Source: Pelomyxa schiedti
Taxonomy: Eukaryota; Protista; Evosea
Assembly (NCBI GenBank): GCA_020536535.1
Contig: JAHLWZ010000753.1
Coordinates: 1 to 53,673 of the forward strand
DNA: 53,673 bases
Direction of reading: 5' to 3'
Below, one piece after another: positions 5,262 to 27,422 of the stretch (position 1 is the first letter of the stretch; each line of letters starts with the position of its first letter). Made by a program: the position numbers and the translations under genes. Below the pieces are notes generated by a model. The model worked only from the letters and a program-made list of their open reading frames with translations, did no database searches and was not told the DNA's origin.

Positions 5262-8200
5262 TCAAAGCTTGGATGATGAAGCGTTTGCAGCAACACCAGC
5301 CACTGTGGGTGTCTTGAAGAACTGTTCAAGGGTCACATTAAGCCCAGCAAGCAACATCTCAGATGTTATCCTTGTCATGTGCATCGAATTGCCACCAGCT
5401 TCAAAGAAGTTGGTTTTCACACCACCATTGAACCCAAAGACCTTCTTCCAGAGGGCAAACACAACCTTCTCCTTCTCAGTGGATGGGGGTGTGTGGTCTT
5501 CAGCACCTGAACTGTGGACTGCTGCAGGTTTTGACAGGGCATTGCGTTGGACCTTTCCAGAGGCACTCAGGGGCAGGTTTTGCATCAGCACAATTGAAGT
5601 GGGAACCATGTAACGCGGAAGCCTGTCTGAAAGGAAAGCCACAAGGTCATCTGCCATGCCTTGAATCCGAATGACCGCACCCGTTCCAACTTTCTCGAAA
5701 CCCTCATCAAGTATTTCCTCAGTGGGCACAACATAAGCAGCAAGGAACTTGTCACCGGGAGTGTCCTCCCTGAGGGTGACAACAGCATCTTTCACGAATG
5801 GGTTCGAGTGCAGGCACTCTTCAATCTCACCGAGCTCTATTCTCAGGCCGCGGAGCTTGACCTGGAAGTCGGCCCTTCCAACGAATGCGAGCTCACCGTT
5901 CGGAAGGAACCTGCCAATGTCACCGGTGCGGTAAAGCTTCCCTTGGCACGGCAGTGCAGGGACAGACACGAAGTGTTTCGAGTTGAGTTCTTCCCTGTTC
6001 ATGTATCCCATCCCCACAGAGGTGCCTCCGATGAACATCTCCCCGACGACACCCACGGGAACGGGTTGCTGATTCCTGTCGAGCACGAACACCTTCACGT
6101 TGTCGATCGGTCTGCCAAGGGGAACGACGTGACTGGAAGAGTAGAGTGTGTTCCTTTGTGCAAGCGCACTGAGGCAGTCAAAAGAGGTTGTTCCGCACGA
6201 GGCTTCTGACGGACCATACACGTTGATGAGCTGAACTTTATCCCCAAAAGTGTCGGTGAATCTGGCAACATCCTCCCACAGAAGTGCATCCCCTCCTGAA
6301 TAAACAAGCTTCAACGAGGAGGTCATCTGTTTGACGTCGGGGTGCGTTCGAGCAACGCTGATGAATTCCTTCAGAACCGCGGGCACAAAGAAGATCCAAG
6401 TGATTCGTTCGGAGAACACGAGCTGCAACAGAGCTTCAGGATCCATGTCAGCACCAAGAGGGCACAGTATACCACAGGAACCAACAATGAGAGTGAAGAA
6501 AATGTCAGCCACAGAGGCATCAAAGTAAAAAGGTGACTTGACGAGGAAGCGCGATTCTGACGTGAGTCCAAACTTCGATGTGAGCCACAGACCGTGGTTG
6601 ACAGCACCAATGTGGTGGTTCACAGCCAACTTTGGCTTCCCAGTGGATCCAGAAGTGAGGATTGCATAAATCGGTTCCTGGCCAGTCTTGATCACGTGTG
6701 GTGGGTTGCTGGTCGGCATGTTCTCCCAGAGGTTGGAATCTTCCAGGACTGAGATGGCGCGAGGGGACCCACTTGGAAGGCACTTGGAGAGTGATCCCTT
6801 CGAAAGGAGGACGAAAGGAGGTTGGGAGTCGGCGAAGACGCTCGAGAGGCGGTCGCTGGGAGACATGGGATCGAGGGGGATGTAAGCAGAACCCGCCTTG
6901 AGAACAGCGTAAATCGCAACATACATCTCGATTGACCTCTCGGCAATGATGGGGACGAAGACACCAGGACCGACCTTGCCGGTTGCGATCAGGTGGTGCG
7001 CAAGTTTGTTGGCCCTGCTGTTCAGCTGCTCGTACGTCACCGTTGTCTCCAGGAACTTGAGTGCTGGTGCACTCGGCCTCTCTGCCGCATTCGCTTCGAA
7101 GAGGTGGTGCACTGCCACTCCGCTTCCGCTGTGATCCTTCTCCGTACAGTTCCACTCCTCCAGCTGCATCGTGGCCTCTGCTTGTGGAACGACAGTCAAC
7201 TCTGAGAGTTTGAGATCAGGTGAAGTTACAATGCACTGACAGAGAACTTCCATGCTTTTGGCCATACGAGCAATGGTGGAGGCATCGAAAATATCCTTGG
7301 CGAACTCCCAGTACATTTCAACATCGCCTCCGTTTGGCAACGCTCTTGCAAACAGTGTGAGGTCAAGCTTTGCAGTACCGTGTTCGCGCTCCAAAAGCTG
7401 TATTTCTTCCACTCGTTGCACGCCGTTCATCTTGAATCCCGAGTCGAACATCTGCCACTCGTCCATCACGAACATTGCTTGGACGAGCGGCTGCACCTCC
7501 AGGCTCCTCTCCACGTGAACGTGCTCGACAACCCACTCGAACGGCACATCCTGCGCAACCTGGGCTGCGAGCATCTTCCGCTTCACCTGCTCCAGGGTGG
7601 TTGTGAATGCCTGGCTCTCGTCCACGCGCAGCCTGATGGCAAGGGTGTTTACGAAAAACCCAATGATTCCCTCCACTCCGCCATAGTGCCTGTTCGCCGT
7701 AGGTGTGCCGACGACGATATCCCCATGCACCGGCGATGATGCCGAGCCATCATCGGCTTGTTGCGCGGCGCACTGCTGCCAGTTTGGGGAATACCGGTGC
7801 AAGAGAACCTGGAACACCGCAAGCAACGTGACGAAGGGCGTTGCATTGTGCCTGCGACCAAGGTCGACGAGTGCGGCGAACAGGGAGGATGGGAGGCGGG
7901 AGAAATGGGCACCGAGGGCGTAAGTCCTGGCCTGGGTCCTGGGGCGGTCCAGAGGGAGGTCACAAACTTGTTTGACATCTTTGAGCTCCTTCTTCCAGTA
8001 AGTGATCTGCTTCTCTGCTTCGGGGTCCTGCATGAACTTCTGTTGCCACAGCGTGAAATCCGCATACTGCAACGGTAGGGGCGGAAGAAGAGCTGTCGAA
8101 GTTGATGTGTGTGGGGGGACACTGTCGTTGTACAAGTGAGCAAGCTCTTTGATGAAAACAGACAAGGACCACCCATCTGAAACGATGTGGTGCATGGAAA

Positions 8201-11200
8201 TGAGGAGGCCGTGGGTGTTTGTCCCGAGGTGGCAGAGCACAAGTCTGACAAGCGGTCCTCTCTGAAGGTCGAAGGCTTTGCCAAGCTCTTGCACGACCAT
8301 TTTTGATAACAATCCGTCTTCTTCCTCTCTGTCTCCTGGGAGCTCAACTGTTGTCATCTCAAAAGCAGTTGCTGCTTCCTCCTCTGGTAAAATGCTTTGG
8401 TAGGCACTTGATGGGCCATCAATGAACCTTGTCCTCAAAGACTCGTGGCGCCTCACGAGGCACAAGAGTGCATGGCGCACCAGCTTCTCGTCCACAGTGC
8501 CCTGAAGCTTCATGCCCAGGCCCATGTTGTACTGCGTCAATCCAGGTTTGAGCTTGTCGAGGAAGAACAACCTGCTCTGAGCAAATGAAAGTGGAACTTC
8601 TGGCGGCCGGGGGGCCACTGCCGCCGTGATCAAAAACTTCTTGTCAGAATCAGCAATGTGCGCCCTTTCCTGCACAAGTGCCGCAATGCCTGCAATTGTT
8701 CGGCCTTCGAAGAAGTCCCTCAGCACAATTCCTGGCACCCCTCTCCTGCGTGCAACCGCCAATGCTCTCATGGATTGAATAGAGTTTCCGCCGGCATCAA
8801 AGAAATCGGTGTGTTTGCGCAAGCGAGACGCAAAATTGCTGCTGGGAGCACTTTCTTTCAGACACTCCTGAATCAGCTTCTCCAAAGCAGACATGTTCGA
8901 GTCCTCAGCTGCATCGGCACTGGCGTTGCTTTCACAAGAGCGGTAACCTGTTGCGTCGCTGGCAGCTGGTTTGGGCAATGCCTTTCTGTTCGTCTTCCCT
9001 GCTGAAGTCAAAGGGAACTGTGACAAAACGGTGAATGTGCTGGGTACCATGTACGAGGGCAATTTGGACTTCAGGAAACCAGAAAGTGTAACCGGGATAT
9101 TTGGCAAGCACGGTGCGTTGGTGGCAGTCCCTGCCATCGTCAAGGTCAGGTACGCAGCAAGGAACTTGTCACCGGGAGTGTCCTCCCTGAGGGTGACAAC
9201 AGCATCTTTCACGAATGGGTTCGAGTGCAGGCACTCTTCAATCTCACCGAGCTCTATTCTCAGGCCGCGGAGCTTGACCTGGAAGTCGGCCCTTCCAACG
9301 AATGCGAGCTCACCGTTCGGAAGGAACCTGCCAATGTCACCGGTGCGGTAAAGCTTCCCTTGGCACGGCAGTGCAGGGACAGACACGAAGTGTTTCGAGT
9401 TGAGTTCTTCCCTGTTCATGTATCCCATCCCCACAGAGGTGCCTCCGATGAACATCTCCCCGACGACACCCACGGGAACGGGTTGCTGATTCCTGTCGAG
9501 CACGAACACCTTCACGTTGTCGATCGGTCTGCCAAGGGGAACGACGTGACTGGAAGAGTAGAGTGTGTTCCTTTGTGCAAGCGCACTGAGGCAGTCAAAA
9601 GAGGTTGTTCCGCACGAGGCTTCTGACGGACCATACACGTTGATGAGCTGAACTTTATCCCCAAAAGTGTCGGTGAATCTGGCAACATCCTCCCACAGAA
9701 GTGCATCCCCTCCTGAATAAACAAGCTTCAACGAGGAGGTCATCTGTTTGACGTCGGGGTGCGTTCGAGCAACGCTGATGAATTCCTTCAGAACCGCGGG
9801 CACAAAGAAGATCCAAGTGATTCGTTCGGAGAACACGAGCTGCAACAGAGCTTCAGGATCCATGTCAGCACCAAGAGGGCACAGTATACCACAGGAACCA
9901 ACAATGAGAGTGAAGAAAATGTCAGCCACAGAGGCATCAAAGTAAAAAGGTGACTTGACGAGGAAGCGCGATTCTGACGTGAGTCCAAACTTCGATGTGA
10001 GCCACAGACCGTGGTTGACAGCACCAATGTGGTGGTTCACAGCCAACTTTGGCTTCCCAGTGGATCCAGAAGTGAGGATTGCATAAATCGGTTCCTGGCC
10101 AGTCTTGATCACGTGTGGTGGGTTGCTGGTCGGCATGTTCTCCCAGAGGTTGGAATCTTCCAGGACTGAGATGGCGCGAGGGGACCCACTTGGAAGGCAC
10201 TTGGAGAGTGATCCCTTCGAAAGGAGGACGAAAGGAGGTTGGGAGTCGGCGAAGACGCTCGAGAGGCGGTCGCTGGGAGACATGGGATCGAGGGGGATGT
10301 AAGCAGAACCCGCCTTGAGAACAGCGTAAATCGCAACATACATCTCGATTGACCTCTCGGCAATGATGGGGACGAAGACACCAGGACCGACCTTGCCGGT
10401 TGCGATCAGGTGGTGCGCAAGTTTGTTGGCCCTGCTGTTCAGCTGCTCGTACGTCACCGTTGTCTCCAGGAACTTGAGTGCTGGTGCACTCGGCCTCTCT
10501 GCCGCATTCGCTTCGAAGAGGTGGTGCACTGCCACTCCGCTTCCGCTGTGATCCTTCTCCGTACAGTTCCACTTCTCCAGTTGGTGTCTCTCAAGCACTG
10601 AAATGGGGAACATGTTTGAGATGCTTTGTGATGGGACCTTTGTAACTGCTTTCATCAGTGCCTCAATGTTGAGAGCCATTCTTTGGATGGTGGACTGGTC
10701 AAAGACGTCTCTGGCAAACTCAAACTCCATGTGAAGCTCCTTGTTGACAACGTAACAATGCAGTGTCAAGTCAAACTTGGTGACTGGAGCCTGCACACCA
10801 CTCAATTGATGTGCTGACTGGATTCCTTCCAAGGAGAAATTGTTTGGATTGTCGAAGTCCCAGTCATCCATGACGAACATTACTTGCACCAGTGGCTGTA
10901 TGTTGAGCTTGCGTACGACTCCAATTGCTTCAACAACCCAGTCGAAGGGAATGTCTTGTGCTCCTTGTGCTGCCAAAACCTTTTCTTTGACCTGTGTCAG
11001 CACAGACCCAAAGTCTTTGTACTCTGGGATCCTGAGCCTGATGGCAAGGGTGTTGACAAAGAATCCAATGAGAGAATCCACTCCGGGGTAGTGTCGGTTC
11101 GCTGTTGGAATCCCCGCAACGACGTCACATTCCGCATCTTCTTCTGATGGTGGTGATTGAAAACGTTGGGAATGGAGATGAAGCAGAAGCAGGAACACAG

Positions 11201-14200
11201 ACAGAACTGTCATGAATGGGGTCGCATCAGAGCAAGAGCGGCCAAGTGAACACAATTCTCCAAAGGAAGCAGACGAAATAACATGTGTGTGGGTACCTGC
11301 TGCATACGTGCGGTGTTGTGCTCTGGGCCTGTCAAGCGGAAGATCGCACACCTCGGGTGCACCTTCCAACTCTTTCTTCCAGTAAGATAGCTGCACGTCT
11401 TTCAACTCGGGTGACTCTAACAGCGCTCTTTGCCAGAGGGAAAAGTCTGCATACTGGAAGGGAAGTGCTGGCAGAGGTGACGGCGCCATGGATTTGTCCC
11501 CTGTTGAAAGTGCCAACTCTCTGTTGTAGTTGTAGGAAATTTCTTTTAGGAAAGCAACGTAAGACCACCCATCGACAATGATGTGGTGAGCATTCACAAA
11601 CAAGATGGTCACTTCCTTGGACACTCTGAAAAGAGCCAATCTCAACAGAGGGCCAGTTTGGAGGTTGAAAGGTCTGAGAACCTCCTTTTTGCAACCCTCC
11701 ATGATCCACTCTTCCTTCTTTTGTTGTTCATCGTCTTGAAGGCCAGGGTAAGCAAACTCAGAGATTTCAAACCCTTGCTGGGCCTCTTTGGGTGGCAGAA
11801 TCAGCTGGTGTGGGTCGTCATCTCCGGAAACGACGAACCGTGTCCGAAGGGATTCGTGCCTCTGCACAATGGCGAGCGTTGCTTGTTGGAGAAGAGGAGC
11901 GAGAGGGGCAGACCCTTGCAGCTCGAGAGCGCCCCAAGTGCTGTACTGCACAGAGTTAGGTTCGAGTTGGTCAATGAAGAAGAGCCGCAACTGTGAGTAC
12001 GAAAGTGGAACTTTGGGGGGCCTCTGCATTGCATGTGGAGCTTGAATAGCCACGGCAGTTCTTAATGAGATGTGCTCTGTCATGGTACGAATCGTTCTCC
12101 ACTTGAACAAGTCCTGGATTGTCACCTTCCAGCCTCTCTCATTTGCACAAGCGATAAACTTGATCGCTTTGACCGAATCTCCCCCAGCTTCAAAAAAGTC
12201 TTCATCCAGTGTCTGTGGTGGAGCAGTGATGGCCTCACACCACGACTCGTAGACAACACGTTGCTCTGGTGACAGGAACTCTTTGTTGAGTTGTTGTGGT
12301 TGTTGCACATTTCCTCCCACTGATGATGCTGTCTTTGGTTTGGGACCAACAAAACCTGTCGTGCAGTTGACAATGGATGTTTTCAAGGAAAGCCCAGCGC
12401 AAATCATGTTTGTCAAAGATCCCACTCCTAATGGTCCAAAGTCGAACAGCTTCACCTCGGTGCATCCACCCTTGAGTGAAATTGCAGCCCTGTTGTTGTG
12501 TGTTTCAGGTGACGAAAGGGATGAGTGGGTTCTTACTTGACACAGTCTGGCCAATTGAAAGAAAGCTCCAGGCCATCTCTCACGATACGTGTAAAGATAC
12601 TTATGCTGTCTTCCTAAGTGTATTGCTTAGAGACCAATTTAAAAAATCCAAGTTGAGAAGGCGAACATACTTGAGATAGATCAGTCAACTTGCTTGAGCT
12701 GATCACTGAAGGATTGTTTGGCACTGGAGCCAACACTTTGCCAAAGCCACCAGACTTGAGATTGCGCAGTAATTTATCAGTGGGGCTGTGGGTGTAAAAC
12801 TTATTGTGAAGTGGAAAGACAACAGGTAAGGGCGAAGTCTGATCAGGCAGAGCGGATTTAAGTTTTGCTATGCTTGTTGGGTGTCCTGTGTGCACATCAG
12901 AAAATTATTTTCTCATACTCCAACTAACCAGAGATTTCTGTTAAATCGGGACCCATGTTGATGCAGGCATGAAGTGGAGCATTTGGGCATTCAGTGTTGA
13001 TGGATTGGAGTGCCCTCTGAACGACTTCTTCCGGGGCTGTTACTGTGGCAAGGCACGAGTTGGTGAAGACATCTTTCCCCCACTGTCTGATATACTCATC
13101 AATAAATTCAGCAAAGCACAACAGCTGACAAAAAGAAATCAACGCTGAAATGGCTTGCAACTGCTTGAGAGAATCTGGAAGAAAAATGTGGAATCAGACT
13201 TAAAAAAAGGAAGACAGCCACACTGACCTGCTCTGCTCAAGACAACGCATGAGGTCTGCCCTGAAGAATACCCAAGCAAAACGTCAAATGATCTGAGGTA
13301 AGTCATAAATCGATTGTTTCCGTCAAGATCATAATCGTCATTGCCAGTTGACAGTGCGGAAGCAATGAAGCATGCAACGTTGTAGAAAGTACACAGAGAA
13401 GCAAGAAACAAGCAGGAAAGTACTTCATTGCTGGGGCAGCTTGATTCATTCTGCACCCTGGTAAAAAAAGGGAGAAGGTTGAGTGAGATTGTAGTAAAAA
13501 AGATTTGCGAAAGTGAAAATACCATGAATACAAATCAACAGAACCCCCCGATCGGAAAAATTGATCCAGAACTGGGTGTTGGGAGCGGAGTTTGTCAAGT
13601 GTATCACGGTGTATGGCCGCCAACGCGCACAGTGAGGATGATGCTCCATAGAGCCACTTGTCCACCAAGGGGAACATGTTGCACAGCATCCTCAACTTGC
13701 CAATCAACCATGCTCTGATGTCTGGATCGGGGCTGAAACCACCAACTACTGCAATGCGCTTGGTTCTTTGGCACTGAGGTTCACCAAGAGGTTGAGTCAC
13801 AGATGGTGTGGTGGACACTGGAGTATCTTGTGAGGTTGTGACTTCTGGTTTTTGTGAGGGTGCTGTCAGATTTACGGGTTGTGGCTCAGCTGCTGATGAC
13901 ACTTTCGAATGTTCGAGAACGGCTTTTTCCATGGGGGTGCGCTTTGGAATGTTGGGTGGGATGGTGACGGTGGTCCCTTTTGGCTCTTCTTGTTCACCTC
14001 TCAGGGTACTGATTTCCGAGGCCAGCTCCCCAATTGATATGCTGCTCAGTAATTTCAGCGGTGAAATGTTAACACCAAGCTCAGACATTATCCATGTCCG
14101 CAAACTCGTTGCCACAAGGCTCCCGATGCCTTGCGATGCCAATACCATGTCTTCTCCAATGGACTGCTCCTCAATGCCCAGGGTCTTTGCCACACGCGCT

Positions 14201-17200
14201 TTCAGGAGGGAAAATACGGAAATTTCTCCAGCAACTGCCTTGTGTGCATTTTCATCAACGATATGATTTTCAGAAAACCTGGCAAGAGAAAGGGTGGTTT
14301 TGAAGCCCATGCAAAACAGGCTATCGTCAATGGAGAAGAGTGAAACTGGGGAATCCGATTCTTTCCTTGAAAGAATAGCATAAAGGCAATCAAGAGAAAC
14401 TGTTGCAGAAACCTGGCTTATGCCATTGGCAGCAAGTGACACTGCTGGCAAGGGAGATGTGGTCAAAACTCCTGTTTCTCCGATCGCACCCCACTGAACA
14501 GAAAGGGCAGGCAATCCAAGGTGATGCCTGTACTGAACGAATCTGTCCATAAAATAGTTTCCCGCAACGTACGATGTTTGACCATCTATGCCAAGCAGAG
14601 AGGAGATTGAGGAAAACATCACGAAGTGCTTGACTGGATGTGAGAGTGTGGCCTTGTGCAAATGCCATGCACCAATGAGTTTTGGGAAACAAACACGTGT
14701 GAACTTCTCCAAGGTGAGGTTGTAGAGAGAGCAATCCCCATATAAAGTAGCACTGTGGTACACTCCTTCCACTGGTGGCAATTCGGCCTCAATCACCTTG
14801 AACGCTGCGACAACTGAATCAAAGCTGCACACGTCGACGGAGAGGCAGAGAACTTTGCACCCGTGGCATTTCAACCAGTCGATCGAGTGTTTTTCAAAAC
14901 TGGTCTTTGGTCTCCCGTCACGGGATGCAAGGGCAAAGTTCCGTGCACCGTGGTAAAACAACCACTTGGCAACCAAAAATCCAAAGCCATTCAATCCACC
15001 AGAAACGAAGTAAGACGCATTCGCACTGCACAACCAACTGCTGCCATAGGCGCTTGGGAGCAGTTCCAACTTCTCAACTGGTCGTTTCATGGAGATGGAT
15101 ACTGCTCCTCTCTGATCTGGCTCAGAGAGCTGATCCAATGCTTCTTGGATGTGCGCAAGATCATACGATTGTACTGGAATGACGCCAGCCAAGGCCGATA
15201 CAACTTTCACGATTTCAGGGCCAAATTCATCAAATACCATGTCATCTGGAATGCTTGAGAGTTCGACAACTTGAATGGACTGGTTTTCAGTCAGTAGACA
15301 TCTGGGAAGCTGTTGTCCAGGAACGAGTTGAAGGAACCTTCCATTTCTTGCCAGGGTTTGAAGGGACTCGTCAGCAAGCATTCCCCCAAATGCATTCACA
15401 ACAATATCCACACCACGACCGCAAGTTATTTCGTTGATCTTGTCATAAAACTTTGGGTCATTCCCAGCAATGACATTTTCCAATCCAATCACTTCCCTGA
15501 GGTACTGCGCCTCATCCTCAGAAGAGGCTGTGGCCAACAATCGCAGCCCAAGGGACTTGGCAAGGTGAACAACAGCCAGACCCACTCCGCACGAAGCGGA
15601 ATGAACCAAAATACACTCCCCTTTGCAAGCCCTCGCACAGTGGACAAGCGAGTAAACAGCAGTCCACGCAGGAATCCCCAAAGCGGAAGCTTCTTCCAAC
15701 GAGACATTTGTTGGCTTGGGAAACACCGAATGGCAGTTGCAAATCAGGTGCGAGCACAGAGCTCCCAATCGGGGCATCACGATGACTTCATCCCCAGGCT
15801 TCACGTGAGTGACTGCACTTCCAACACGCTTCACCACACCGGATCCTTCCAATCCAAGCTTCCCATACTTGTGCCATTGCCCTGTGGCCGTTTCCACGTC
15901 GAGCAGTCCCTTGGAGATGAGGAAGTCCTTTGAATTCAAGCCGACGTGCTTCATCTCTGTGCAAACTTCGGTTGGGGCCAGGGCGCAGCCAACATTTATC
16001 CTCACAAAGCGAGGCGGGGACCCGGCGGAATCAAACTGGACCTCCCACCCTTCCTCCACTTGAACTGGTTCGGGTTGCCAATCAAGTCGAGAGATTGATT
16101 CCTTGTAGTCACCGATGTTCACTCGCACGCAGAACCGTCGGTTGTTGCTGATGCAAACTTCGGTTTCGAGTGGATTGTTCCACCCATGGAGTGCTTCTTG
16201 AACGATGTGCGTTTTCCAAGTGCTTTCCTCGTCACAAGGGTCGAGGTCGATCACCTTCAGGTTATGTGCCGTTTCTGTGGTGGCAACTCGGGCCACTCCT
16301 CCCAAAGAGAACAAAGAAACTGCTGGTGTGTGGCAACGAGCCATCCTGGGATCGTAGACTCCCGTTGTCACGATGAGCATCCGGCAGTGCAAATCAACTT
16401 CGCTCAGGGCCGTGGACAAGTAAGCGATACATAACGCACTTTCAACTGAAACTCGTTTGAGTTCTTCGTCAACAGGTTCCGCTTTTGTGTAGTGTTCTGT
16501 GGGCCACGCGTTGACAACCTCACAAGCGGTGGGTTTCCCAATCGATTTTATCAACTGAACCCAATGGTCTTTGTTCAAGGGATCGATGCAAATGGTACTT
16601 CCGTCAGCTGTTGTTTCGTACTTCGGGCTTTGCCTGACAGAGATCGCCTTCTCAAAACGAGATCTCAGGGAGGAAAGGAGAGACTCACAAAATTCATTCC
16701 CACAAGACAGAAAGATCAAAACTCCTTGCTTATTCCTGGCTTCGGCTTCATTCTCATCAGGAGAACTCTCAATTGGCACAGCGAGAGGTAGCTCAATCCA
16801 CTTTTCCATGCCCAGTGATACGTTTGGGATTTTATTTGAAACGGCACTCAGCCTCAGATTCTTGATGGAAATCAGTGGCTTCCCAGTCATATCCATCAAG
16901 ACCGCGTCGCCAATCATGGACTTCTGAGGAACAAAATGTGTTATTTTGGTGTGGCACCAAAACGATGAAAATGTGCGGGCTGCTGTTGTTGGTTTTTGTG
17001 CAAGAAACGATGTGAAGGCGAGTTCGATCCCTTTGGAAGCACCTGTGTCAGAGACAACAGCCGAAAAACCTGAGCTGTGCAAACGCTTGATCCATTCATC
17101 CCTGGGAATGCACACGTGATTCCTGTCTGTTGGGTCGTTTTCCCACCATTGATCAAACAAGCCAAATACGAAGTTGAAGAACACGGACTCTTTGTGGGTT

Positions 17201-20200
17201 GGCTCGGTGAGAAGCAGCACACCACCAGGAGACAGAGCATCGTAAATTCTGGAGAGCACATCTCCCAACACTGGCGCAACATGAACAACAGAAAAAGCTA
17301 TCATCACGTCCACGTCTCGCAGATCCTCGGGGAATGGCTGAGAGATATCAAGTGCACTGCATTGGACGAATGGGAGGGGAGCGAACATCTCTTTGGCTTT
17401 GCTGACGAAGAGGGGCGAGACATCTGTGAATATGTACTCCACCTCGCATCCACGATCGTGGGCTTCTTGGCAAATGGGAAGAAGCTGCCTGGTAGCTCCG
17501 CCAGCGCCCCCGCCGATTTCCAGAATCCTGATTCTCTTTCCACGTTGCAAGAGCTGTCCAAAAACTGGGAGAGACGCTTTGGTGAGGTTGCATGTCACAG
17601 ACTCGTTGTAGAATCTGGAAAGTTTGTCGTCTTCCAAAAGAGAAGTCGAATTGCTGAAAAGGTCGACCAGTTGCCTACCCACAGTGTGGACCAACTCTGC
17701 TTCAATGTTCATCACCTTGAAGGGATACAAAAGCACTTCAGATGTTTGGCTATCCCCATGGAGACTTTGATGCCAACTGATATATTTTCTCTTGCTTCGA
17801 CTCCAATCTGTGGTGCTTGAAGCAATGGCCTGACAGAACTGGGCAGAGTAATGCTTGCACAGCTGCACCAACTGCGCATTTTCTTCAAGAGCCAAATGCA
17901 AGCGCTCCTCCTCAATCACGTTGTGTTCCGGAATGAACCTGCTCTCCTTGAGGTCCACGCAAAAATCTTCTTTGCTTCCTCCCTCCGTTCCAAGTGGAGC
18001 AAGTATCTCAAGATAACCGAGAGACGAGGGAAGGAGAATGCTCAAACCACGAAGGTCGGGGAGACCCAACAGCCCACCGATGATGCACTGAAAGCACGCG
18101 TCCAACACTGCCGGATGAACTGCTGAGTTTTTTGCGACTGAGGCAAGCGCGGCGTTGCTGAATTTAATTTGACCAAGTGCTTCATTGAAGTTGGTGTTTT
18201 CAACAAAAATCCTGGATATTGGAGCAAACAGCGATTTGTAATTCAACCCCATCTCCGCGAAAGACTTGTATATCACTGAGTGCCCTTTCATCAGTTTGCA
18301 TATTGCTTTGAGTGTGTCGATGTTTGTTTCGGGCAAAGCTATTGGTTTGGGTTCGGCTATCAATTCTATTGTGCACGAGGAACGCTTTGAAAGGGTTTTT
18401 TCCTGCTCGGCTTTCGTGTGCACTTCGAATCCCATTTGTTTCGATGTTGGGTGATAGTCTGTGACAACGCATTTGAACTCCACGTACGAGTCGGGGGATA
18501 GCACGACAGGACTGTGAAACATCATTTTTGTCACGGAAACTTGGTTTGTTCTCCAGATCTCCCTGGCAGCCAGTGTTGCCAACTCTGCATAAAATGCACC
18601 GGGAATCACAATGTCCTCTCCAGTGCTTATCCTGTGCTCAGAGAGCCAGGGGTACAGGTTCAGGGCAACCACGTTGCTCCAAGATGGAACCGGGCTATCA
18701 TCACGCAACCCCAAGAGGCTGTGTGTGGCATTCAGCCCACGTTTGTATGTACTGAAGGACTTTGGTTCCATTATCCGAACGGTGTTTTGCCACACCGGCG
18801 CGCTGGGTATCTTGACCCACCTCGACTTGTCCTCTTCCGCGTAAGGAGCGAGTGGGTGCTTGCTGACGTTGTGCCAGTTCAGGCTGGAGATGCCGTTCAC
18901 GTACAGAGTGCCAAGGTTCGACAGCATCGTCAAACGCTCGGGCTTGTTTCGCTCGATGGAGTGCACAATGACCGTCGGGTTCTTTGGCGTTGATGGTGCG
19001 GTGGTCGAAAGGTACACGGAAAGGACTGGGTGGTTGGCAAGCTCCACAAACACGTTGAACTTCTCCTCGAGAGCGCAGAGAACCGAAAGGTAAAACAGGA
19101 CGCTGCACCTCACGTTCTTCCACCAGTATTCTGGCCCTGGCGGTTCCGTCATAAATTTGCCCAACACCGTGGAGATTATCGGGATCTTTGGATGCGGTGC
19201 AGGGTTGAGGCCTTGAAGCTCCTGAATCAGCTGCTCTTTGATCTGGTCTGTTTGGTAACTGTGGAACGCGTTTTGTACGTGCAGGAACCTTGCGAACTTC
19301 CCCTGCGATTTAAGTTTTTGCTCCAAAGAAGCCAGTGTAGCAGGGTCCCCTGCTAAAACAACCGAATCGGCACTGTTTACGGAGGCGATGTCCACCCCAG
19401 TCACGTTGGAGATCAGTTCCGTTGCGTCCGAGAACGACATGCTGATGGCAAGCATCCTCCCTTTCCCGCTCAACGCCTGTTGCAGGCGAGACCTCACGCT
19501 GATGACGAGTACGCCTTCTTCCAACGTCAGGTAGCCGCTCACTACTGCTGCTGCCACTTCTCCGACGCTGTGTCCGACGACGGCATCGGGAACAATTCCC
19601 CAATGCTGCCACACTGCGTTCAAGCCGATCTGGACAGCAAAGATCAACACTTGGGCGTACTGTGTCTGGTTCACGTGCGAGTCCACCTCGGCTTTGTGAA
19701 GTTCCTCTATCACCGACCACCCCATCACTCTTCTCCCAATGCTGTCGACTTGTGTAATCGCGTCCCGAAATATCACGTCTTCAGAGAAGAGCTGTCTTCC
19801 CATTGCGAACCACTGAGGCCCCTGACCAGAAAAAACGAACAATGTCTTGGAGTTCTTCGTTGAGAGAAGTTGAGATGCCCCAACCTTCCATTTTGCATCC
19901 ACTTCTGCTTCAGCTTTGGGATTTTGTATGAAACTGTTCAAGGCGCTAGATATGTCCTGTGAAGTTTGCCCCAGAACTGCGAGGCGCTGGGAATAATGAT
20001 TCGTGCGTTTTCCAGCACTGTAAACGATCTCTGTCCATCCACTTTTGCTCACTGACAGAAAGTCGACCCACCTTTGCGCGGATGCTGCAAGTGCAGCACT
20101 GGTGTGTGCAGACACCGGCAGAAAGTAGAATGGTTTTCCACCAGAAGCCATGTCGGAGGGGATCGGCAGCGATTCTACAACAAGGCCATGATGGACAGGT

Positions 20201-21650
20201 GTTTGATGCTCCTCAACGACCACTGTTGCGTTGCTGCCTCCAAATCCAAATGAATTGGCAACTGCAATCTTCTTGTTTGTGGTGATCTTGCTCCACTGTT
20301 CCCCTTTCCATGAGACAGAAAGGCTTCCAAAGTTGATGTGTGGATCAACAGGTACAACGAGTTGGGGAAAAACTTCATCATGCTAAAAGTGGGTCAATTT
20401 TGGGTTTTTTTTTTTTTATTTTAATGCAAACCTGCATCATCAGAATGATTTTGGTGAGACTTGCCAACCCAGCACACGCCTCAGTGTGACCAATGTTTGC
20501 TTTCACTGAACCTATGAAACAAGGACCTCTTGCTCCCGTAGCTTCCTCACTGAAAACTCTCTTCAGAGAGTCTACCTCAATCGGATCACCCACTGGTGTT
20601 CCAGTGCCATGAGCCTCGACATATGAAACGTTGGCAGGGTCCACTTGTGCCAATGAAAGAGCTTGCTGCAGAACAGAGACTTGACCACTGCACTTAGGTC
20701 GATTAATGAACTGTTTGCTGCCGTCATGGTTGGTGGCTGTGCCAGATATTACACAGTAGATATGATCACCATTGGCAATAGCATCTGGTAAAGGCTACAT
20801 TTTGAAAAAAAACCAAAATAGGAGAGAAGAACACAGTGGGTTGGAAACGTCTTATTAAGTTGAAACATACCTTTAAAAAGAACGCAGAGGTGCCTTCGGC
20901 CCTGACATATCCATCCGCGTTGGAACCAAATGTGTGGCACTTGCCTGAGGAACTTGTCATTCCTGCTCGAGAAACAGAAAGCGAAAACTGTGGCAGCAGC
21001 ACTAAGTTCGAAGCAGCAACCAACGCCGAGGCACAGTCTCCGGCCCTGAGGCTCGAGCACGCAAAATGCAAAGCGACGAGGGAGCCACTGCAGGCAGTGT
21101 CGACGGTTACACTCGGTCCCTTGAAATCAAAAAACCACGAGAGACGGTTGCACAGCATGGACAGAGCCACTCCGTTGGCAGTGTAAGGAGACACGTCGGG
21201 CTCCGTCATAAGTGCGATGTTTTGCCAATCGATTCCGAAGCTGGCAACGAAAACGCCGGTCGAGTTGTCACTCCCGCCGTGAGGAAGGAGGTCTCGGTCG
21301 GCCACGCTCGTTGGGAATGTCTCGCCGGCGTCAGCCAAAGCTTCGCAAGAGACTTGCAGAAGTTGGTGCTGCAAGGGGCCAAGGAATGAGGCCTCGCGAG
21401 GCAGTAAACCGAAGAACGCGGCGTCACAGTGAGTGGCAGGATCACTAGTGCCCGCGAATGGTGTTTTAATCTTGCCGAGAGCACAGTGGACTTCTGTATT
21501 GAACCTGTGAGATGGAACTTTTTGGATGGCGTCGGAACAGGTGTGCAAGAGGTCATAGAAGTCGTCTATGTTTTTCGCAGTGGGAAATCTGCAACTTGTG
21601 CCCGTGACTGCAACCAAGAACCTCTCCGTGCTGCTGGAGTGTCGGCTCAT
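5262..21650 (-). CDS. Hybrid PKS-NRPS megasynthase, ~5,332 aa: KS-AT-DH(cMT)-psiKR-ER-KR-ACP-AT(SAT/FAS-like)-T-C-A-T-C-A-T, C-terminal SKL
   Basis: Exons 21650-20871, 20794-20432, 20382-13523, 13457-13228, 13174-12929, 12885-12671, 12613-12537 and 12489-5262 (sum 15,999 nt); all introns GT..AG and phase-compatible. Motifs: KS DTACSGS / EAHGTGT / NIGHTE / NSFGFGG; AT GHSVG, NAFHS; DH EHRISTGEDIVIP, LDACFQ; MT LEIGGGAGG; ER HSASCGVG; KR SGGLNGFG, GQTSYVAGN; ACP GIGSL; second AT GYSSG; T GGDS, GGNS, GGNS; C HHIIVDG, HHIVSDG; A TSGSTGKPK, YGPSE, YRTGD, QVKLRGLRIELGEIE. Confidence 0.9.
5737..7156. repeat. Intragenic duplication copy (A-core of NRPS module 2)
   Basis: Matches 9154-10573 at offset 3417. 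No mismatch seen, and the alternative-frame ORFs are identical in both copies. Confidence 0.95.
9154..10573. repeat. Intragenic duplication copy (A-core of NRPS module 1)
   Basis: Matches 5737-7156. Confidence 0.95.
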
Positions 21651-21941
21651 CTTTGTTCCCTGTGTACTTTCTTCTTAAAATTCTTCTTTGTCCAATGTGC
21701 TTAAGCACCCTTTTCAGGTTTTAGGAGAATGTTATGAGTGCTCTGATATCAGCCAGGAATAGCGAAGTTGTTCATCATTGAAAAGCATCAAGAAGGGTGG
21801 GAAATTTCATTCCTTGCGTATGAATCCACAGTTGTTTGTCACCAGCATTCCAAGAATTACGTCAAAAGTAATACACATTGGACACCCTTTTTTTATCCTC
21901 TTTGTTTTTCCTCCCATTTTACACCACCACCGGCCAACCAA
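21651..21941. promoter_or_regulatory. Putative bidirectional promoter between the two PKS genes
   Basis: 291-bp AT-richer spacer between divergent ATGs at 21650 (-) and 21942 (+). Positional inference only. Confidence 0.45.
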
Positions 21942-24900
21942 ATGGGCAACACCCCACCACAGCCGGGCATCACCAACATTGCAAATCTCCCAGGAGTGGT
22001 CCTACCCCCCAAATTGAACCCGGCCCCACTTCCGACTACCACCGCAATCGCTTCGCCAGACGTGTCGGAACCCACCACAGCCGCCTCCGCTGTATCCGCT
22101 GTGCCCCCGGGGCTCTCCAACGTTGAGAGGGGCCTCGCTACCGTCGGCGATCTCACGCTGCCGCTACCGATCGTGCCTTTCGCCCCCGTCGCCGTGATCG
22201 GCGCCGCCGTGAAGCTGCCCCAGATCAATGGGTGGGACGACGCGTGGACCGTGTTTTCCCAGGGCCTCGACGTGATGACTCGCTGGGACTCGACCGACCC
22301 GCTGCTGGTAGGCTCTCGCGGCTTCATCGAGACGGCCGAGGAGTACGACTACAAGTTCCTGGGCAGCAAGCACCCCCGCATGGAGGACCCGCAGGCGCTC
22401 CTGATCAAGGAGCTGGTGTGGAACGCGCTCGAGGACTCTGGCTACTGCCCCTCGATGTTGGCCACGATGCCAGGCCGCGTCGGCTTATACGGCGACCTCA
22501 ATCCGTTCTACTCGTACGAAATGATCTCCCACGTGATGAAGGGGTTTGACGACATCTCCGTCATGACGCCGCAACTGCTCTTCACTTCGTCCTACACCGT
22601 TCCCTTCAAGATCCTGGTTGGCGTAGCCAACGGCATTCGCGCCCACGGGCCAGTCCTTCACATTTCCAGCGCTTGCAGCACTTCGGCTGCGTGCATGTTG
22701 GCTGCTTGCGACGCCCTGCATTCCCGGCGCATCGAGATTGGCATTGCCACCGCCGCTACTGTGGGACACCCTCGTCGTCCCATAACTGGTTACAGCAAGG
22801 AATCCAAGGGGCTTTACAGCGTCGATGGCTTCGTCAGGCCCTTTGAAGCCAGGGCCTCGGGCTTTGTTCCGTCAGAGGGAGGTGCTGTGCTGATATTGAA
22901 GACCGTGGAGGCTGCCTCGCGGGACAACGACGTGATACACGCCGTGATTGATGGGGTGGGGGTTTGCTCCGATCCGTCCGTCCTGCCCTCGCCCGACGCA
23001 ATCAGCGCCACTCTGGTTGCAAAGTGCATAGTTGAGGCTATGAGCACCGCCGGGGTGAAGAGCAGCGACGAGATTGGCTACGTGGAGTGCCACGGGTCTG
23101 CCACGACAGTCGGAGACTTTTCTGAGATAGTAGCACTCCGGGCGGCATTGCAACATCCAACAAAGTCGAGGTTCTGCGCTATTGGTGGAAGTAAAGCCAA
23201 CGTTGGTCACTTGGGTGGGTGCCCTGGCCTCGTGTCAGTTATGAAGGCAGCCCTCATTCTCAAGTACAACTTCATCCCACCTTTGGCAAACTTTGAGAAC
23301 CCTAGCCCTATCACAGACCACATACTCAAGCAGCCAGGGTGCCCTGTGTTCCTACCAAAGGTTGGACACACCCCTGCGACCCCAATTACCAAAATTGGAG
23401 TTCAGTGTTCTGGCCCTGGAGGTGGTTACCACTGGATCCTGTCCAAACCTGCTCCAATGCCCGCATTTGTGGAATCCACTGTTTCACGCCGGACTTTCAT
23501 TTTCTGCACCTCAGCCAAGACTTCCACTGCAAATGTCACACTATCTGAAAACACGACCAAGCTAATCTGTGACAAGCTTCAACGGCCAGATGGAATCGAA
23601 TTTGCACTTAATTCAGAGTGGACTCTGCAAACACGCAGGGAATACTTCCTTGAAAGGAGCTCTGTGGTTGTAACTCTTTCCTTGGGTGGTATGAATTTCG
23701 TTGCTCATAGAAATTTATGTAACTCACCCTATCTCTCACTGGCTATAGATTTCCCACAAGCTGTTGTTCGTGCCTTGGCTCCTGTTAGGAATAGTGTCGC
23801 CAACCAAAACGAGGATGTGCGGGTTGCCTTTGTCTTCTCTGGATTTGGGGTTTGCAGCCGGCAAGCAGCTAAAGAGCTGTACCATCAGTATCCTGTTTAT
23901 AGGGAAACTTTTGATCGGTGCAGCAAGTACATACAAGAACTTACGCAAGGAGAACGTAATATCGTGTTGTCAGCAGATGATCTTGCTATTGATTCAGCCG
24001 AAGACACTTATTTCATCGCCCTCGCCTTTGTGACACTTCAGTTGTCCATTTCGCAGCTTCTACTTTCATGGGGCATCGAGCCAACTCAAGGAATGGTTTG
24101 CCACAGCCTTGGAGAATATGCCTGTGCCGTGGCCTCTGGTATGCTGACCATCGAAGAGTGCCTGAAACTCACAAAGCTTCGTTTTGATCTTCTTACAAAG
24201 CTGCCAACGGTTGCCGCTGTAGTTGTGTCAATGGTGGTTGTGAAGAGAGTGTGCGACTTGGTGGCAGAGATCAACAAATTGGACGGTGCGGCTTCTTCAG
24301 ATGACCAAATTGAAGTGACGGTGATGAATAGTCCGACAACTTGCATGGTTTTAGGGCCCCATGTCAAGGTTGATGCATTACTTCTGAAGCTGAAAGGAAC
24401 CCCCTGCAAGACTACAACGTTTGCACCCACTCCCTCGCACTCGAAAAAGGTGAGCCCTGTTCTGCAGCAATTCCGCGACGCTTTCGTCGGAATGAACATC
24501 CCGGTGCGCTCAGGAAAGTACAGATATATCAGTACTCTGAATGCGGACTGGGGGAAGCTTGAGGACTTGTCTTCAGCGGACCATTTCTGTGAAGCTTTGT
24601 GCCATCCTGTCCTCTTCCACCAATCCATGCAAAAACTATTCACCTCTTGGTTGGCCGAGAGTGCTGCCGCGCAAGATTCCCAGAAAGTGAGGAAGATGAT
24701 TATATTTGAAATCGGAGCAAGCTTATCAACCCATATTCATGATATTGCATATGCTGAATGCGGAGAACTTCCCAGCGACCAAGCACCCGCCAGTGTGTTG
24801 GCACTTCCCCTCTTCCTGCATCAGCGCAACAGCACGCTCAACGCTGCCCAACACTTGTGTGTGCAACTTGGAACTTCCTGGGTGAACGGAGCAAAGTTTA

Positions 24901-25361
24901 GCTGGACAAAGTATTCTGAATCCGCGGGAGGGGCCAGGCGCCATGTGGTTCCGTTGTGCCTGTATCCCTACGAGAGAGTAAAAACCACCTTTGACGTACC
25001 CACCGAGCCACTGTCGAGGGAGGCATTCTTCGAGAAGCTTATGGAAATGCCGCAGCCCGCAAGTGCGCAAGAAACGGCGCCATCAACAACTGAAATCCCA
25101 ACAGTGCTGGGCTCCACTCTCACGCCCAAAGAGGTTGGAGTAATCGCAGAAAAGTGGACGCTTTTCGTTCACACCCCACCCAAGACGGAGGGAGACAACT
25201 TCTTCGAATTTGGAGCAACCAGCCTGACGGCGATGCAAATGATTTCGTCAATCAACAGGGTTCTTGGGTTAACTTTCCAGTCCGTAACCTTCACGGCCAC
25301 AACACCCACTTTTGGAAACCTGGTCCGCGCTTACTCCCAACACAAGGTCTCTCGCACCTGA
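21942..25361 (+). CDS. Single-module type I PKS (KS-AT-carrier protein), ~1,139 aa, intronless
   Basis: KS triad SSACSTS, VECHGSAT, KANVGHLG; AT AFVFSGFG, VCHSLGEY, TPSHS; carrier NFFEFGATSLTAMQM. Pro-rich N-terminal extension. First ATG is 21942 (the ORF-track start is a TTG). Confidence 0.88.
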   Translation: MGNTPPQPGITNIANLPGVVLPPKLNPAPLPTTTAIASPDVSEPTTAASAVSAVPPGLSNVERGLATVGDLTLPLPIVPFAPVAVIGAAVKLPQINGWDDAWTVFSQGLDVMTRWDSTDPLLVGSRGFIETAEEYDYKFLGSKHPRMEDPQALLIKELVWNALEDSGYCPSMLATMPGRVGLYGDLNPFYSYEMISHVMKGFDDISVMTPQLLFTSSYTVPFKILVGVANGIRAHGPVLHISSACSTSAACMLAACDALHSRRIEIGIATAATVGHPRRPITGYSKESKGLYSVDGFVRPFEARASGFVPSEGGAVLILKTVEAASRDNDVIHAVIDGVGVCSDPSVLPSPDAISATLVAKCIVEAMSTAGVKSSDEIGYVECHGSATTVGDFSEIVALRAALQHPTKSRFCAIGGSKANVGHLGGCPGLVSVMKAALILKYNFIPPLANFENPSPITDHILKQPGCPVFLPKVGHTPATPITKIGVQCSGPGGGYHWILSKPAPMPAFVESTVSRRTFIFCTSAKTSTANVTLSENTTKLICDKLQRPDGIEFALNSEWTLQTRREYFLERSSVVVTLSLGGMNFVAHRNLCNSPYLSLAIDFPQAVVRALAPVRNSVANQNEDVRVAFVFSGFGVCSRQAAKELYHQYPVYRETFDRCSKYIQELTQGERNIVLSADDLAIDSAEDTYFIALAFVTLQLSISQLLLSWGIEPTQGMVCHSLGEYACAVASGMLTIEECLKLTKLRFDLLTKLPTVAAVVVSMVVVKRVCDLVAEINKLDGAASSDDQIEVTVMNSPTTCMVLGPHVKVDALLLKLKGTPCKTTTFAPTPSHSKKVSPVLQQFRDAFVGMNIPVRSGKYRYISTLNADWGKLEDLSSADHFCEALCHPVLFHQSMQKLFTSWLAESAAAQDSQKVRKMIIFEIGASLSTHIHDIAYAECGELPSDQAPASVLALPLFLHQRNSTLNAAQHLCVQLGTSWVNGAKFSWTKYSESAGGARRHVVPLCLYPYERVKTTFDVPTEPLSREAFFEKLMEMPQPASAQETAPSTTEIPTVLGSTLTPKEVGVIAEKWTLFVHTPPKTEGDNFFEFGATSLTAMQMISSINRVLGLTFQSVTFTATTPTFGNLVRAYSQHKVSRT

Positions 25362-26657: not shown

Positions 26658-27422
26658 CTATTGTCGCCACCAAAGTACTTGCACAACGCGATTGGGAGAG
26701 CCACTTGGCTGCGCAAAACACTCTCCTTGGCCTCCTGCAGCAACACTCTTCTCCAGATCAACAAACAAAATGAGGCCCCGCTGCAGCCAATCCACCCATA
26801 TTGTGTCTCCCACAAAAACCAGCTGATCACCACAAGGCTCAAATGGAGAGAACCTCGCGCCAAACCCACCAATTGGAACCTTGCGTTCCACAGCAACGCC
26901 GTTGCGCGACACAGGCACGCTGTGTCTCATCCTCCACACCACGAGGTTTTTCACTGCGTCGAACCTCACAAGCCACTTGCAGTTGCTTCTCCAAAAGAGG
27001 CCCGACTCACCACCAACCGTTGCCACCGCGTTCCCCCGGCCGTCGACAACACGTGAGCCCCCCCAGGAGTCACACAAGAAATTGCCATCACCCATCCTCC
27101 CCTCGATGTATCCAAACGTCATGCCGTGGCTGTCTCTGTTGTCCAGGGACAGGCACCACACCACGCCGAGCGTCGAACTCAAACCAATGAAAACGCGAAC
27201 CTGGACTGTCTGCGCCCCAATGGCCACGGTGACGGTTGTGCCCAGATTCCTGCAGCAGCCGACGACCCAGTCGCGGCCGAACGACTCGCACAGCTCCCGA
27301 TTGTGGGACAGAGTCTTGGCCGCGCTCCAAACACCGCACCTATTGATCCTCGAACTCGCAAACGCGACAAACTGCGATCGTGCGTCAATTATGGGTTCGA
27401 TTGTGTGCCGTTGGCTTGCCAT
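26658..27422 (-). CDS. Hypothetical protein of a lineage-specific family (possibly 3'-truncated or frameshifted)
   Basis: Shares DARSQFVAFA, VFIGLSSTLGVVWC, NCKWLV, PCGDQLV and FVDLEKS with 30064-31389, but is only 254 aa versus ~441 aa. Confidence 0.65.
   Translation of the reverse strand: MASQRHTIEPIIDARSQFVAFASSRINRCGVWSAAKTLSHNRELCESFGRDWVVGCCRNLGTTVTVAIGAQTVQVRVFIGLSSTLGVVWCLSLDNRDSHGMTFGYIEGRMGDGNFLCDSWGGSRVVDGRGNAVATVGGESGLFWRSNCKWLVRFDAVKNLVVWRMRHSVPVSRNGVAVERKVPIGGFGARFSPFEPCGDQLVFVGDTIWVDWLQRGLILFVDLEKSVAAGGQGECFAQPSGSPNRVVQVLWWRQ

Follow-up and report, generated by a model that had tools for sequence, protein, structure and literature searches.

The stretch analysed here, hereafter the window, comprises 53,673 nucleotides of the archamoeba Pelomyxa schiedti (contig JAHLWZ010000753.1 of assembly GCA_020536535.1, positions 1 to 53,673), whose minus strand carries an intron-containing eukaryotic gene for a hybrid of a polyketide synthase (PKS) and a nonribosomal peptide synthetase (NRPS). 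Pfam matches on its reading frames give the domain order KS-AT-DH-MT-ER-KR-ACP-X-T0-C1-A1-T1-C2-A2-T2, in which KS and AT are the ketosynthase and acyltransferase, DH, MT, ER and KR the dehydratase, methyltransferase, enoyl reductase and ketoreductase, ACP the acyl carrier protein, T0 to T2 the NRPS carriers, and C and A the condensation and adenylation domains. The element under study is X, a domain of about 400 amino acids at window positions 13779-12348, minus strand, which is encoded by six exons separated by five introns and lies between the PKS ACP and T0. On the 5' side of X, the open frame 13306-20223 (ORF1) encodes the AT, DH, methyltransferase, ER and KR domains followed by a PP-binding domain (aa 2006-2069), with the KS encoded by two short exons farther 5' of that frame; on the 3' side, the frame 5265-12488 (ORF2) encodes a PP-binding domain (78-140), a Condensation domain (159-637), and then AMP-binding, PP-binding, Condensation, AMP-binding and PP-binding domains in succession. 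Thus, the internal position that a sequence-only reading of this DNA had singled out as unusual is borne out by carrier domains on both sides of X and a condensation domain thereafter. The functional motifs of the ACP (GIGSL), T0 (GGDSV) and C1 (HHIIVDGWS) are retained; Pfam on the gene's frames detects neither a thioesterase (TE), reductase (R) or C domain directly after the PKS ACP nor an acyl-CoA ligase in the host gene.

The peptides that the sequence-only reading had quoted for the domain, from RIAVVGGFS through LFDFGPLGVGSLT, are all encoded in this region of the minus strand, and the gaps between them are canonical introns: RIAVVGGFS (13758-13732), DLYSW (13536-13522), VQNESSCPSNEVL (13456-13418), LLGYSSGQ (13279-13256), INMGPDLTEISG (12962-12927), LPVVFPLHN (12829-12803), SFNWPD (12562-12545) and LFDFGPLGVGSLT (12449-12411). 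The six exons each have an open frame and intact splice sites, the five introns (65, 53, 43, 57 and 47 nt) are of the GT..AG type with split codons for W, D, G and K, and the junctions coincide with those of the NCBI spliced models of three paralogues in the same genome, P0005, P0002 and P0006, the last of which is the model of the closest paralogue, on contig C151. The only database protein from the host gene is P0007, an ORF-style call of 2381 aa (window 12411-5265) that starts at a Met within the last X exon; hence, the X of the window locus is absent from the protein collection searched, and a look-up through neighbouring genes and paralogues found no gene model covering it on record. The features, in the direction of transcription and with ratios of nonsynonymous to synonymous substitution rates (dN/dS) where they bear on a piece, are as follows.

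14017-14208, minus strand: PKS ACP, the last PKS domain (Pfam PP-binding / ACP_SdgA_C, ORF1 aa 2006-2069), with its Ser in GIGSL.
13780-14016, minus strand: Pro/Ser/Thr-rich linker from the ACP to X, from the translation; dN/dS 0.30 against the C151 copy.
13523-13779, minus strand: first coding piece of X, at the 3' end of the large PKS exon, KRIAVVGGFSPDPD...DLYS(W); colinear with the paralogues and 74-76% identical to P0006.
13458-13522, minus strand: intron 1, 65 nt, GT..AG; junction as in the NCBI models P0005 and P0006.
13228-13457, minus strand: X exon 2, with the motif W-x-N-E-S-x-P-S-N-x-x-L and the putative nucleophile elbow LLGYSSG.
13265-13267, minus strand: TCT codon of the putative nucleophile Ser in GYSSG.
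13175-13227, minus strand: intron 2, 53 nt, GT..AG.
12929-13174, minus strand: X exon 3, with the WGK motif and a predicted ferredoxin-like small subdomain (..HACINMGPDLTEISG); per-residue model confidence (pLDDT) 70-92 in the P0006 model.
12886-12928, minus strand: intron 3, 43 nt, GT..AG.
12671-12885, minus strand: X exon 4, HPTSIAKL...LPVVFPLHNKFY, the region of the catalytic His; highest dN/dS of the domain (0.50).
12806-12808, minus strand: CAC codon of the putative catalytic His in PLHN.
12614-12670, minus strand: intron 4, 57 nt, GT..AG, phase 0.
12537-12613, minus strand: X exon 5, EDSISIFTRIVRDGLELSFNWPDCV(K).
12490-12536, minus strand: intron 5, 47 nt, GT..AG.
12348-12489, minus strand: last piece of X, at the 5' end of the large NRPS exon, AAISLKGGCTEVKLFDFGPLGVGSLT...; aligns to DFGPGG..GIGVLT of the beta chain of fungal fatty acid synthase (FAS).
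12069-12257, minus strand: T0, the first NRPS carrier, FFEAGGDSV, Ser codon 12174-12176; Pfam PP-binding, ORF2 aa 78-140.
10578-12014, minus strand: C1, the condensation domain after T0, HHIIVDGWS intact; Pfam Condensation, ORF2 aa 159-637.

A search of the Pelomyxa schiedti genome with the single window exons reveals that X belongs to a family with at least 13 loci, all six exons being colinear at no fewer than ten other loci (C151, C573, C1291, C1593, C1840, C150, C484, C1508, C1674, C259, C722, C4256), along with a further copy, C424, in which three of the exons are fused. Exon-wise alignments yield the family motifs RRIAxxxGFxxDPDxxxWL; SFDVxxGY(S/C)xG; WGK ... SIRLTPxQxVVSG; HPTPLAKL...LPVxxAFHxPFY; INWP; and GGCxxVEIFDFGPxGxGxLT. 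Every family-invariant residue is retained in the window copy and likewise in the C151 copy. The retention of a Ser in GYSSG and a His in PLHN, which the sequence-only reading had claimed, is confirmed by their codons and by the alignments (10-11 copies per exon): the nucleophile is Ser in every copy but one, C259, which has Cys, and the His is present in 10/10 copies. Against 1.84 billion representative proteins, the exon 2 profile finds three true matches only, all from Pelomyxa schiedti and named in their source as non-ribosomal peptide synthetase or type I polyketide synthase of this organism. A pseudo-exon artefact is ruled out by an exon structure conserved at ten or more loci and, with the fold match given below (Z 24-30), the colinear six-exon paralogues show that X is not a product of chance; the notion of X as a mere linker was likewise rejected.

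Two members of the family differ from the rest in ways worth recording. The C424 copy (G000:C424:52480-53001; L034:6409-7017, minus strand) has the counterparts of exons 2-4 in one 203-aa frame (FIGYSVG ... LPVHNAFHTPFYQ) with short neighbouring ORFs, and may be either a small stand-alone transferase or part of a many-exon gene. The C259 copy (L032:3695-3970; P0003) reads GYCGG, with Cys at the nucleophile position as in the classical SAT domains of non-reducing PKSs (NR-PKSs).

As to the identity of X, whole-domain Pfam, fold and language-model tests were run on the public spliced paralogue models, and the window copy was tested exon by exon. SAT (PF16073; curated cut-off 22.8 bits) is the only Pfam family matched on the spliced X paralogues: P0002, P0003 and P0001 score 32.4, 41.6 and 37.5 bits, respectively, and the C424 copy has the highest score in the genome (47 bits). 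A language-model search with the X of P0005 ranked the SAT and FAS_AT_central clusters first (0.90). In searches against the sequences of the PDB, profiles of exons 2 and 4 had no matches, and the whole-domain family profile and the X of P0002 had weak matches only (E 0.15-1.8), which serve as a motif alignment and not as a measure of significance; 9 of the 12 family-profile matches are acyltransferases. The weak alignment of the family profile to Thermomyces FAS beta (4v58_G residues 207-511) is colinear: W..NP...P...L is aligned in both, GYSAG falls on GHSQG, AFHAPFY on PFHSPY, and DFGPPGVGFLT on DFGPGG..GIGVLT, with LPVxxAFHxPFY in the His region aligning to LPITAPFHSPY of fungal FAS beta.

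The family of the common PKS acyltransferases, PF00698, is matched neither by the X exons nor by the paralogue models, whereas the host gene's own PKS AT scores 218 bits. The N-terminal motif of X is GGFS, without GQGSQ, and in the window copy FCQ replaces the (K/R)RG of several family members, at a column that probably corresponds to the carboxylate-binding Arg of the FabD-type ATs. A FabD-type malonyl transferase was hence rejected as a candidate: there is no PF00698 match, the fold match is weaker, and the aligned column has no Arg.

The fold was modelled with AlphaFold2 on residues 2590-3000 of P0006, the window exons entering the input alignment as separate rows. The model has a predicted TM-score (pTM) of 0.71 and pLDDT of 70-92 over residues 30-280, and places the nucleophile Ser between a strand (150-155) and a helix (160-168), i.e., in a strand-turn-helix elbow. 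The top 22 Foldseek matches are fungal FAS beta chains (E 1e-12 to 8e-9, TM 0.58-0.66), followed by the SAT domains of PksA and CTB1, and then FabD. VIA-align gives the same order: Z 29-30 with fungal FAS beta residues ~151-552, its acetyltransferase domain (345-352 residues at a root-mean-square deviation of 3.3-4.0); Z 25.2 with PksA SAT residues 3-365, Z 24-25 with CTB1 SAT and Z 23.6 with CazM SAT; Z ~23 with the mycobacterial FAS-I AT; and Z 21-22 with FabD, MCAT and modular-PKS ATs, the fold alignment ending at about residue 2985 of P0006. An AlphaFold2 model of the P0005 X is poor (mean pLDDT 51), and although its Foldseek list is all AT-fold (TM ~0.2), it is not relied on. The search against SAT and FAS AT structures that had been recommended along with the original fungal-FAS/SAT-type assignment was thus carried out on the sister model P0006, and its outcome, FAS beta first and SAT next (Z 29-30 and, for PksA/CTB1, Z 24-25), upholds that assignment together with the Pfam SAT matches on the paralogues. 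Taken together, the Pfam SAT matches on the paralogues, the fold match and the colinear motifs support X as an intact acyltransferase domain from the fungal-FAS-acetyltransferase/SAT branch of the FabD-like fold, with a putative Ser-His dyad.

The architectures of the family members place the window gene in context. X occupies the N-terminus of P0002 and P0005, both spliced models, as well as of the C573 reading frame; T and C follow it in P0002, P0003 (a model truncated at its N-terminus) and P0005, and then A in P0002 and P0003; and no KS was found on the contigs of the stand-alone X-NRPS copies. Among the copies with a readable upstream end, only those of the window and C151 have a PKS ahead of X, in open frames of 2359 aa and 2300 aa, respectively, that end in exon 1. 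The nearest relative, P0006 from C151, has the same ACP-X-T0 layout, with 65-79% identity per exon. On the strength of this family-wide N-terminal X-T-C-A arrangement, the window gene, and likewise its sister on C151, appears to have arisen by the joining of a highly reducing PKS (HR-PKS) to a SAT-initiated NRPS. The multi-copy family, of which the sequence-only reading had no knowledge, therefore changes the story from that of a domain wedged into a hybrid synthase to that of such a fusion. The contig of the sister megasynthase also has a KS match interrupted by three in-frame TGA codons (G000:C151:20190-20945, minus strand), which may be a PKS pseudogene.

SAT domains are found at the N-terminus of NR-PKSs, before the KS, where they serve the PKS ACP; within a barrel-shaped complex, the fungal FAS acetyltransferase transfers acetyl from coenzyme A (CoA) to the FAS ACP, the beta chain having the order FAS_N-AT-ER-DH-MPT, with MPT the malonyl/palmitoyl transferase; and PKS-NRPS hybrids are normally thought to hand the polyketide from the ACP straight to the condensation domain. 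With the NR-PKS SATs (PksA, CTB1, CazM; PF16073) X shares the fold (Z 24-25 over ~340 residues) and a GX(S/C)XG motif with a His, its putative SAT-type catalytic dyad consisting of GYSSG and PLHN with the His ~120 residues downstream. However, X follows an HR-PKS ACP and precedes an NRPS T-C rather than being N-terminal before a KS, its nucleophile is Ser where Cys is typical of SATs, and its sequence identity to the solved SATs is 11-16%. The X paralogues with a readable start are N-terminal as in SATs, but in an NRPS rather than a PKS. The fungal FAS beta AT, residues ~151-552 in the yeast chain, is the best structural match and is colinear with X in LD..W..NP...P...L, GHSQG/GYSSG, PFHSPY/PLHNKFY and DFGPGG/DFGPLG; yet X is flanked by a PKS ACP and an NRPS T-C rather than by FAS beta domains, and the identity is 16-18%. 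FabD/MCAT and the modular-PKS ATs (PF00698) share with X the fold of the superfamily (Z 21-22) but are a clearly weaker match than FAS-AT/SAT. As in a canonical PKS-NRPS, where C follows the ACP, the product of a reducing PKS and an amino acid would be joined by a C domain within one protein; unlike there, the window gene has X-T0, a transferase and a second carrier, inserted between the ACP and C1.

The closest functional parallels come from systems acting in trans. SATs of NR-PKSs pick up an acyl chain borne by a partner FAS or HR-PKS on its ACP and place it on a carrier (PMC3901194). In the emericellamide pathway, the HR-PKS EasB, the ligase EasD and a separate acyltransferase, EasC, bring the polyketide to the first T of the NRPS EasA (PMC3901194), and in that of beauveriolide BesC is similar to EasC (PMC7471007). 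We propose for X the job that has been proposed for EasC/BesC, in which the chain built by an HR-PKS (KS-AT-MT-DH-ER-KR-ACP) is delivered to the leading T of an NRPS with T-C at its start (PMC3901194; PMC7471007); but these are separate proteins believed to act on a ligase-made CoA ester, whereas X has both donor and acceptor carriers in its own polypeptide, and the likeness drawn here is one of proposed job. In the literature searched, whose coverage is incomplete, neither an ACP-SAT-T-C junction nor these amoeba genes were found described, and no report linked Pelomyxa schiedti with polyketides or Archamoebae with nonribosomal peptides. What is new here is the internal, PKS-fused form of X, an architectural variant of a known domain family.

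Briefly, we advance the following mechanism. In the NRPSs of the family, X-T0-C1 would constitute an initiation cassette, in which X acylates T0 and C1 couples the first amino acid to that acyl group; in the window gene and its C151 sister, this cassette would have come, by fusion, to follow an entire highly reducing PKS. The polyketide finished on the PKS ACP would then move to the X serine as a covalent Ser-acyl and from there to the phosphopantetheine of T0, a ping-pong within one polypeptide, whereupon C1 would condense the T0-bound acyl group with the first amino acid. The acceptor of X is probably T0, judging by the conserved order X-T-C. As for the donor, with no TE, R or C directly after the ACP, the polyketide has no visible way out other than X-T0, which suggests that the upstream ACP rather than acyl-CoA fills this role. 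Since the ACP lacks another exit and SATs accept from partner carriers, the route from ACP to Ser(X) to T0 is the best reading. On balance, we regard it as probable, if by no wide measure, that X is a cassette fused behind an HR-PKS and passes the polyketide along this route to C1. The broader proposition is put forward more tentatively, as something quite possible that falls a little short of probable: that ACP-SAT-T0-C is a distinct PKS-to-NRPS junction, a Ser-acyl shuttle between two carriers of one polypeptide, which arose in an anaerobic amoeba when an HR-PKS fused with a SAT-initiated NRPS of a lineage-specific family. The sequence-only reading had offered the domain either as a dedicated hand-off from ACP to T0 or as a loader of acyl-CoA onto T0; the SAT-type identity underlying both stands, and the transfer itself is made likelier, though not more than that, by the X-T-C paralogues, purifying selection and the want of another ACP exit.

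Selection was gauged by comparing the window with the C151 copy, with counts summed over exons. X has a dN/dS of 0.27 at a dS of 0.61, and is thus under purifying selection, with values of 0.20-0.21 in exons 1, 2 and 6, 0.28-0.29 in exons 3 and 5, and 0.50 in exon 4; the PKS has 0.10-0.20 in its catalytic domains and 0.26-0.30 in its linker-like parts. The window T0-C1 shares 46% identity with the T-C of P0005, a stand-alone copy, and the X of P0006 shares 33% with that of P0005; when two stand-alone copies are compared, the corresponding values are 64% for T-C and 47% for X. The X/T-C identity ratio is therefore ~0.72 in both the fused-versus-free and free-versus-free comparisons, implying that X outpaces T-C in divergence throughout, with no particular excess in the fused copies.

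Several observations weigh against the proposed identity and role of X. P0006, the closest paralogue, scores 19.8 bits on Pfam SAT (E 6.6e-4), a score that is its only match and lies just below the cut-off; the six single exons of the window have no relevant Pfam match, and exon 2 alone has no usable match in the ESM Atlas. The assignments of fold and family rest on paralogues that are 65-79% (P0006) and 25-50% identical. The His motif of the window, VVFPLHNKFY, departs from the family consensus VxEAFHxPFYQ, and exon 4, which carries this His, is the least constrained (dN/dS 0.50). The three sequencing runs that contain the X stretch, the only ones to do so, look like DNA-derived data and show no splice joints. 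Finally, a prediction of the complex of X with the upstream ACP scores 0.38 against 0.10 for the best control, a score of a weak class that may reflect memory of solved AT:ACP complexes; it lends weak support and is not used as a main argument.

Of the alternatives to a transfer from ACP to T0, the one that survives best, unlikely as we hold it to be, is that X loads T0 from free acyl-CoA and not from the fused ACP, with the PKS product following some other route or being released and re-activated as a CoA ester. X is N-terminal in the other family members with a readable start, and the contigs of the stand-alone copies have no KS, for which reason an acyl-CoA, and not a carrier protein, may have been the original donor; moreover, the textbook acyl-CoA user, the fungal FAS acetyltransferase, is the best structural match, and the emericellamide model itself has a CoA-ester intermediate produced by EasD (PMC3901194). 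Nevertheless, the PKS part has no release domain and no acyl-CoA ligase was seen in the gene, so that the polyketide would be left without an exit; the fusion behind the ACP has been retained in two copies at dS 0.6; NR-PKS SATs do accept from carrier proteins (PMC3901194); and the complex prediction of X with the ACP is weakly positive.

If X instead kept the canonical SAT role, it would be a true starter loader for the PKS ACP/KS, for instance of an acyl group from the divergent KS-AT-ACP neighbour lying head to head with the gene (21768-25358), and T0 would be served otherwise. The complex prediction is blind to the direction of transfer and so is compatible with this; but T and C directly follow X in P0002, P0003 and P0005, with no KS on the stand-alone contigs, making T0 the conserved partner, the HR-PKS has an AT of its own, and the KS-AT-ACP homologue lies ~68 kb away in the sister locus. 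We therefore see little likelihood in a starter-loading role. We think it just as improbable that X is an idle remnant of the fusion, a spacer or scaffold, with the ACP passing the chain directly to C1 or T0 being bypassed. The lower Pfam SAT score on the fused side (19.8 bits for P0006, versus 32-47 bits for the N-terminal copies), the dN/dS of the His exon (0.50) and a whole-X dN/dS equal to that of the linker-like PKS regions would accord with idling, but the Ser, the His and all family-invariant residues are retained in both fused copies, six exons are open with intact splice sites, three of them are constrained at dN/dS 0.20-0.21, the T0 serine is retained, and X relative to T-C is no more diverged than in the free-standing copies. 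Finally, X could instead serve for release, unloading the polyketide onto CoA or another small acceptor as the fungal FAS MPT does with palmitate; X and the MPT share a fold superfamily, and no other release domain follows the ACP, but this role is scarcely credible given that the fold match is to the FAS beta acetyltransferase region (~151-552) and not the C-terminal MPT, and that the conserved X-T-C order points to a carrier acceptor.

Should the transfer from ACP through X to T0 hold, the built-in transacylase and second carrier would be another solution to the PKS-to-NRPS hand-over: (i) a fused, single-chain version of both EasC-type loading in trans and the hand-off by SATs from HR-PKS to NR-PKS; and (ii) a self-contained ACP-SAT-T unit that could serve as a portable connector in engineered hybrid assembly lines. 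The relevance of such a hand-off, which is plausible, is to natural-product enzymology. In evolutionary terms, a domain type known mainly from fungal FAS, NR-PKSs and bacterial FAS-I appears to have been recruited in an archamoeba as a standard NRPS starter module.

The neighbourhood of the megasynthase offers some further observations. The gene lying divergently and head to head with it encodes a minimal PKS (KS-AT-ACP) in a 1197-aa open frame (window 21768-25358, plus strand); a homologue of that gene is found on C151, ~68 kb from the sister megasynthase. Beyond it, three ORFs of exactly 254 aa (window 26658-27422, minus strand; 34757-35521, plus strand; 39413-40177, minus strand), one of which was tested against Pfam and had no match, may represent a repeated element. 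The C-terminus of the megasynthase comes directly after T2, without a release domain, and ends in ...ANASSSKL* (window 5262-5273, minus strand), with a PTS1-like tripeptide. Within its NRPS part, the ORF pattern repeats with a period of ~3417 nt (window ~6000-7200 and ~9400-10650, minus strand), which fits near-identical adenylation cores in modules 1 and 2.

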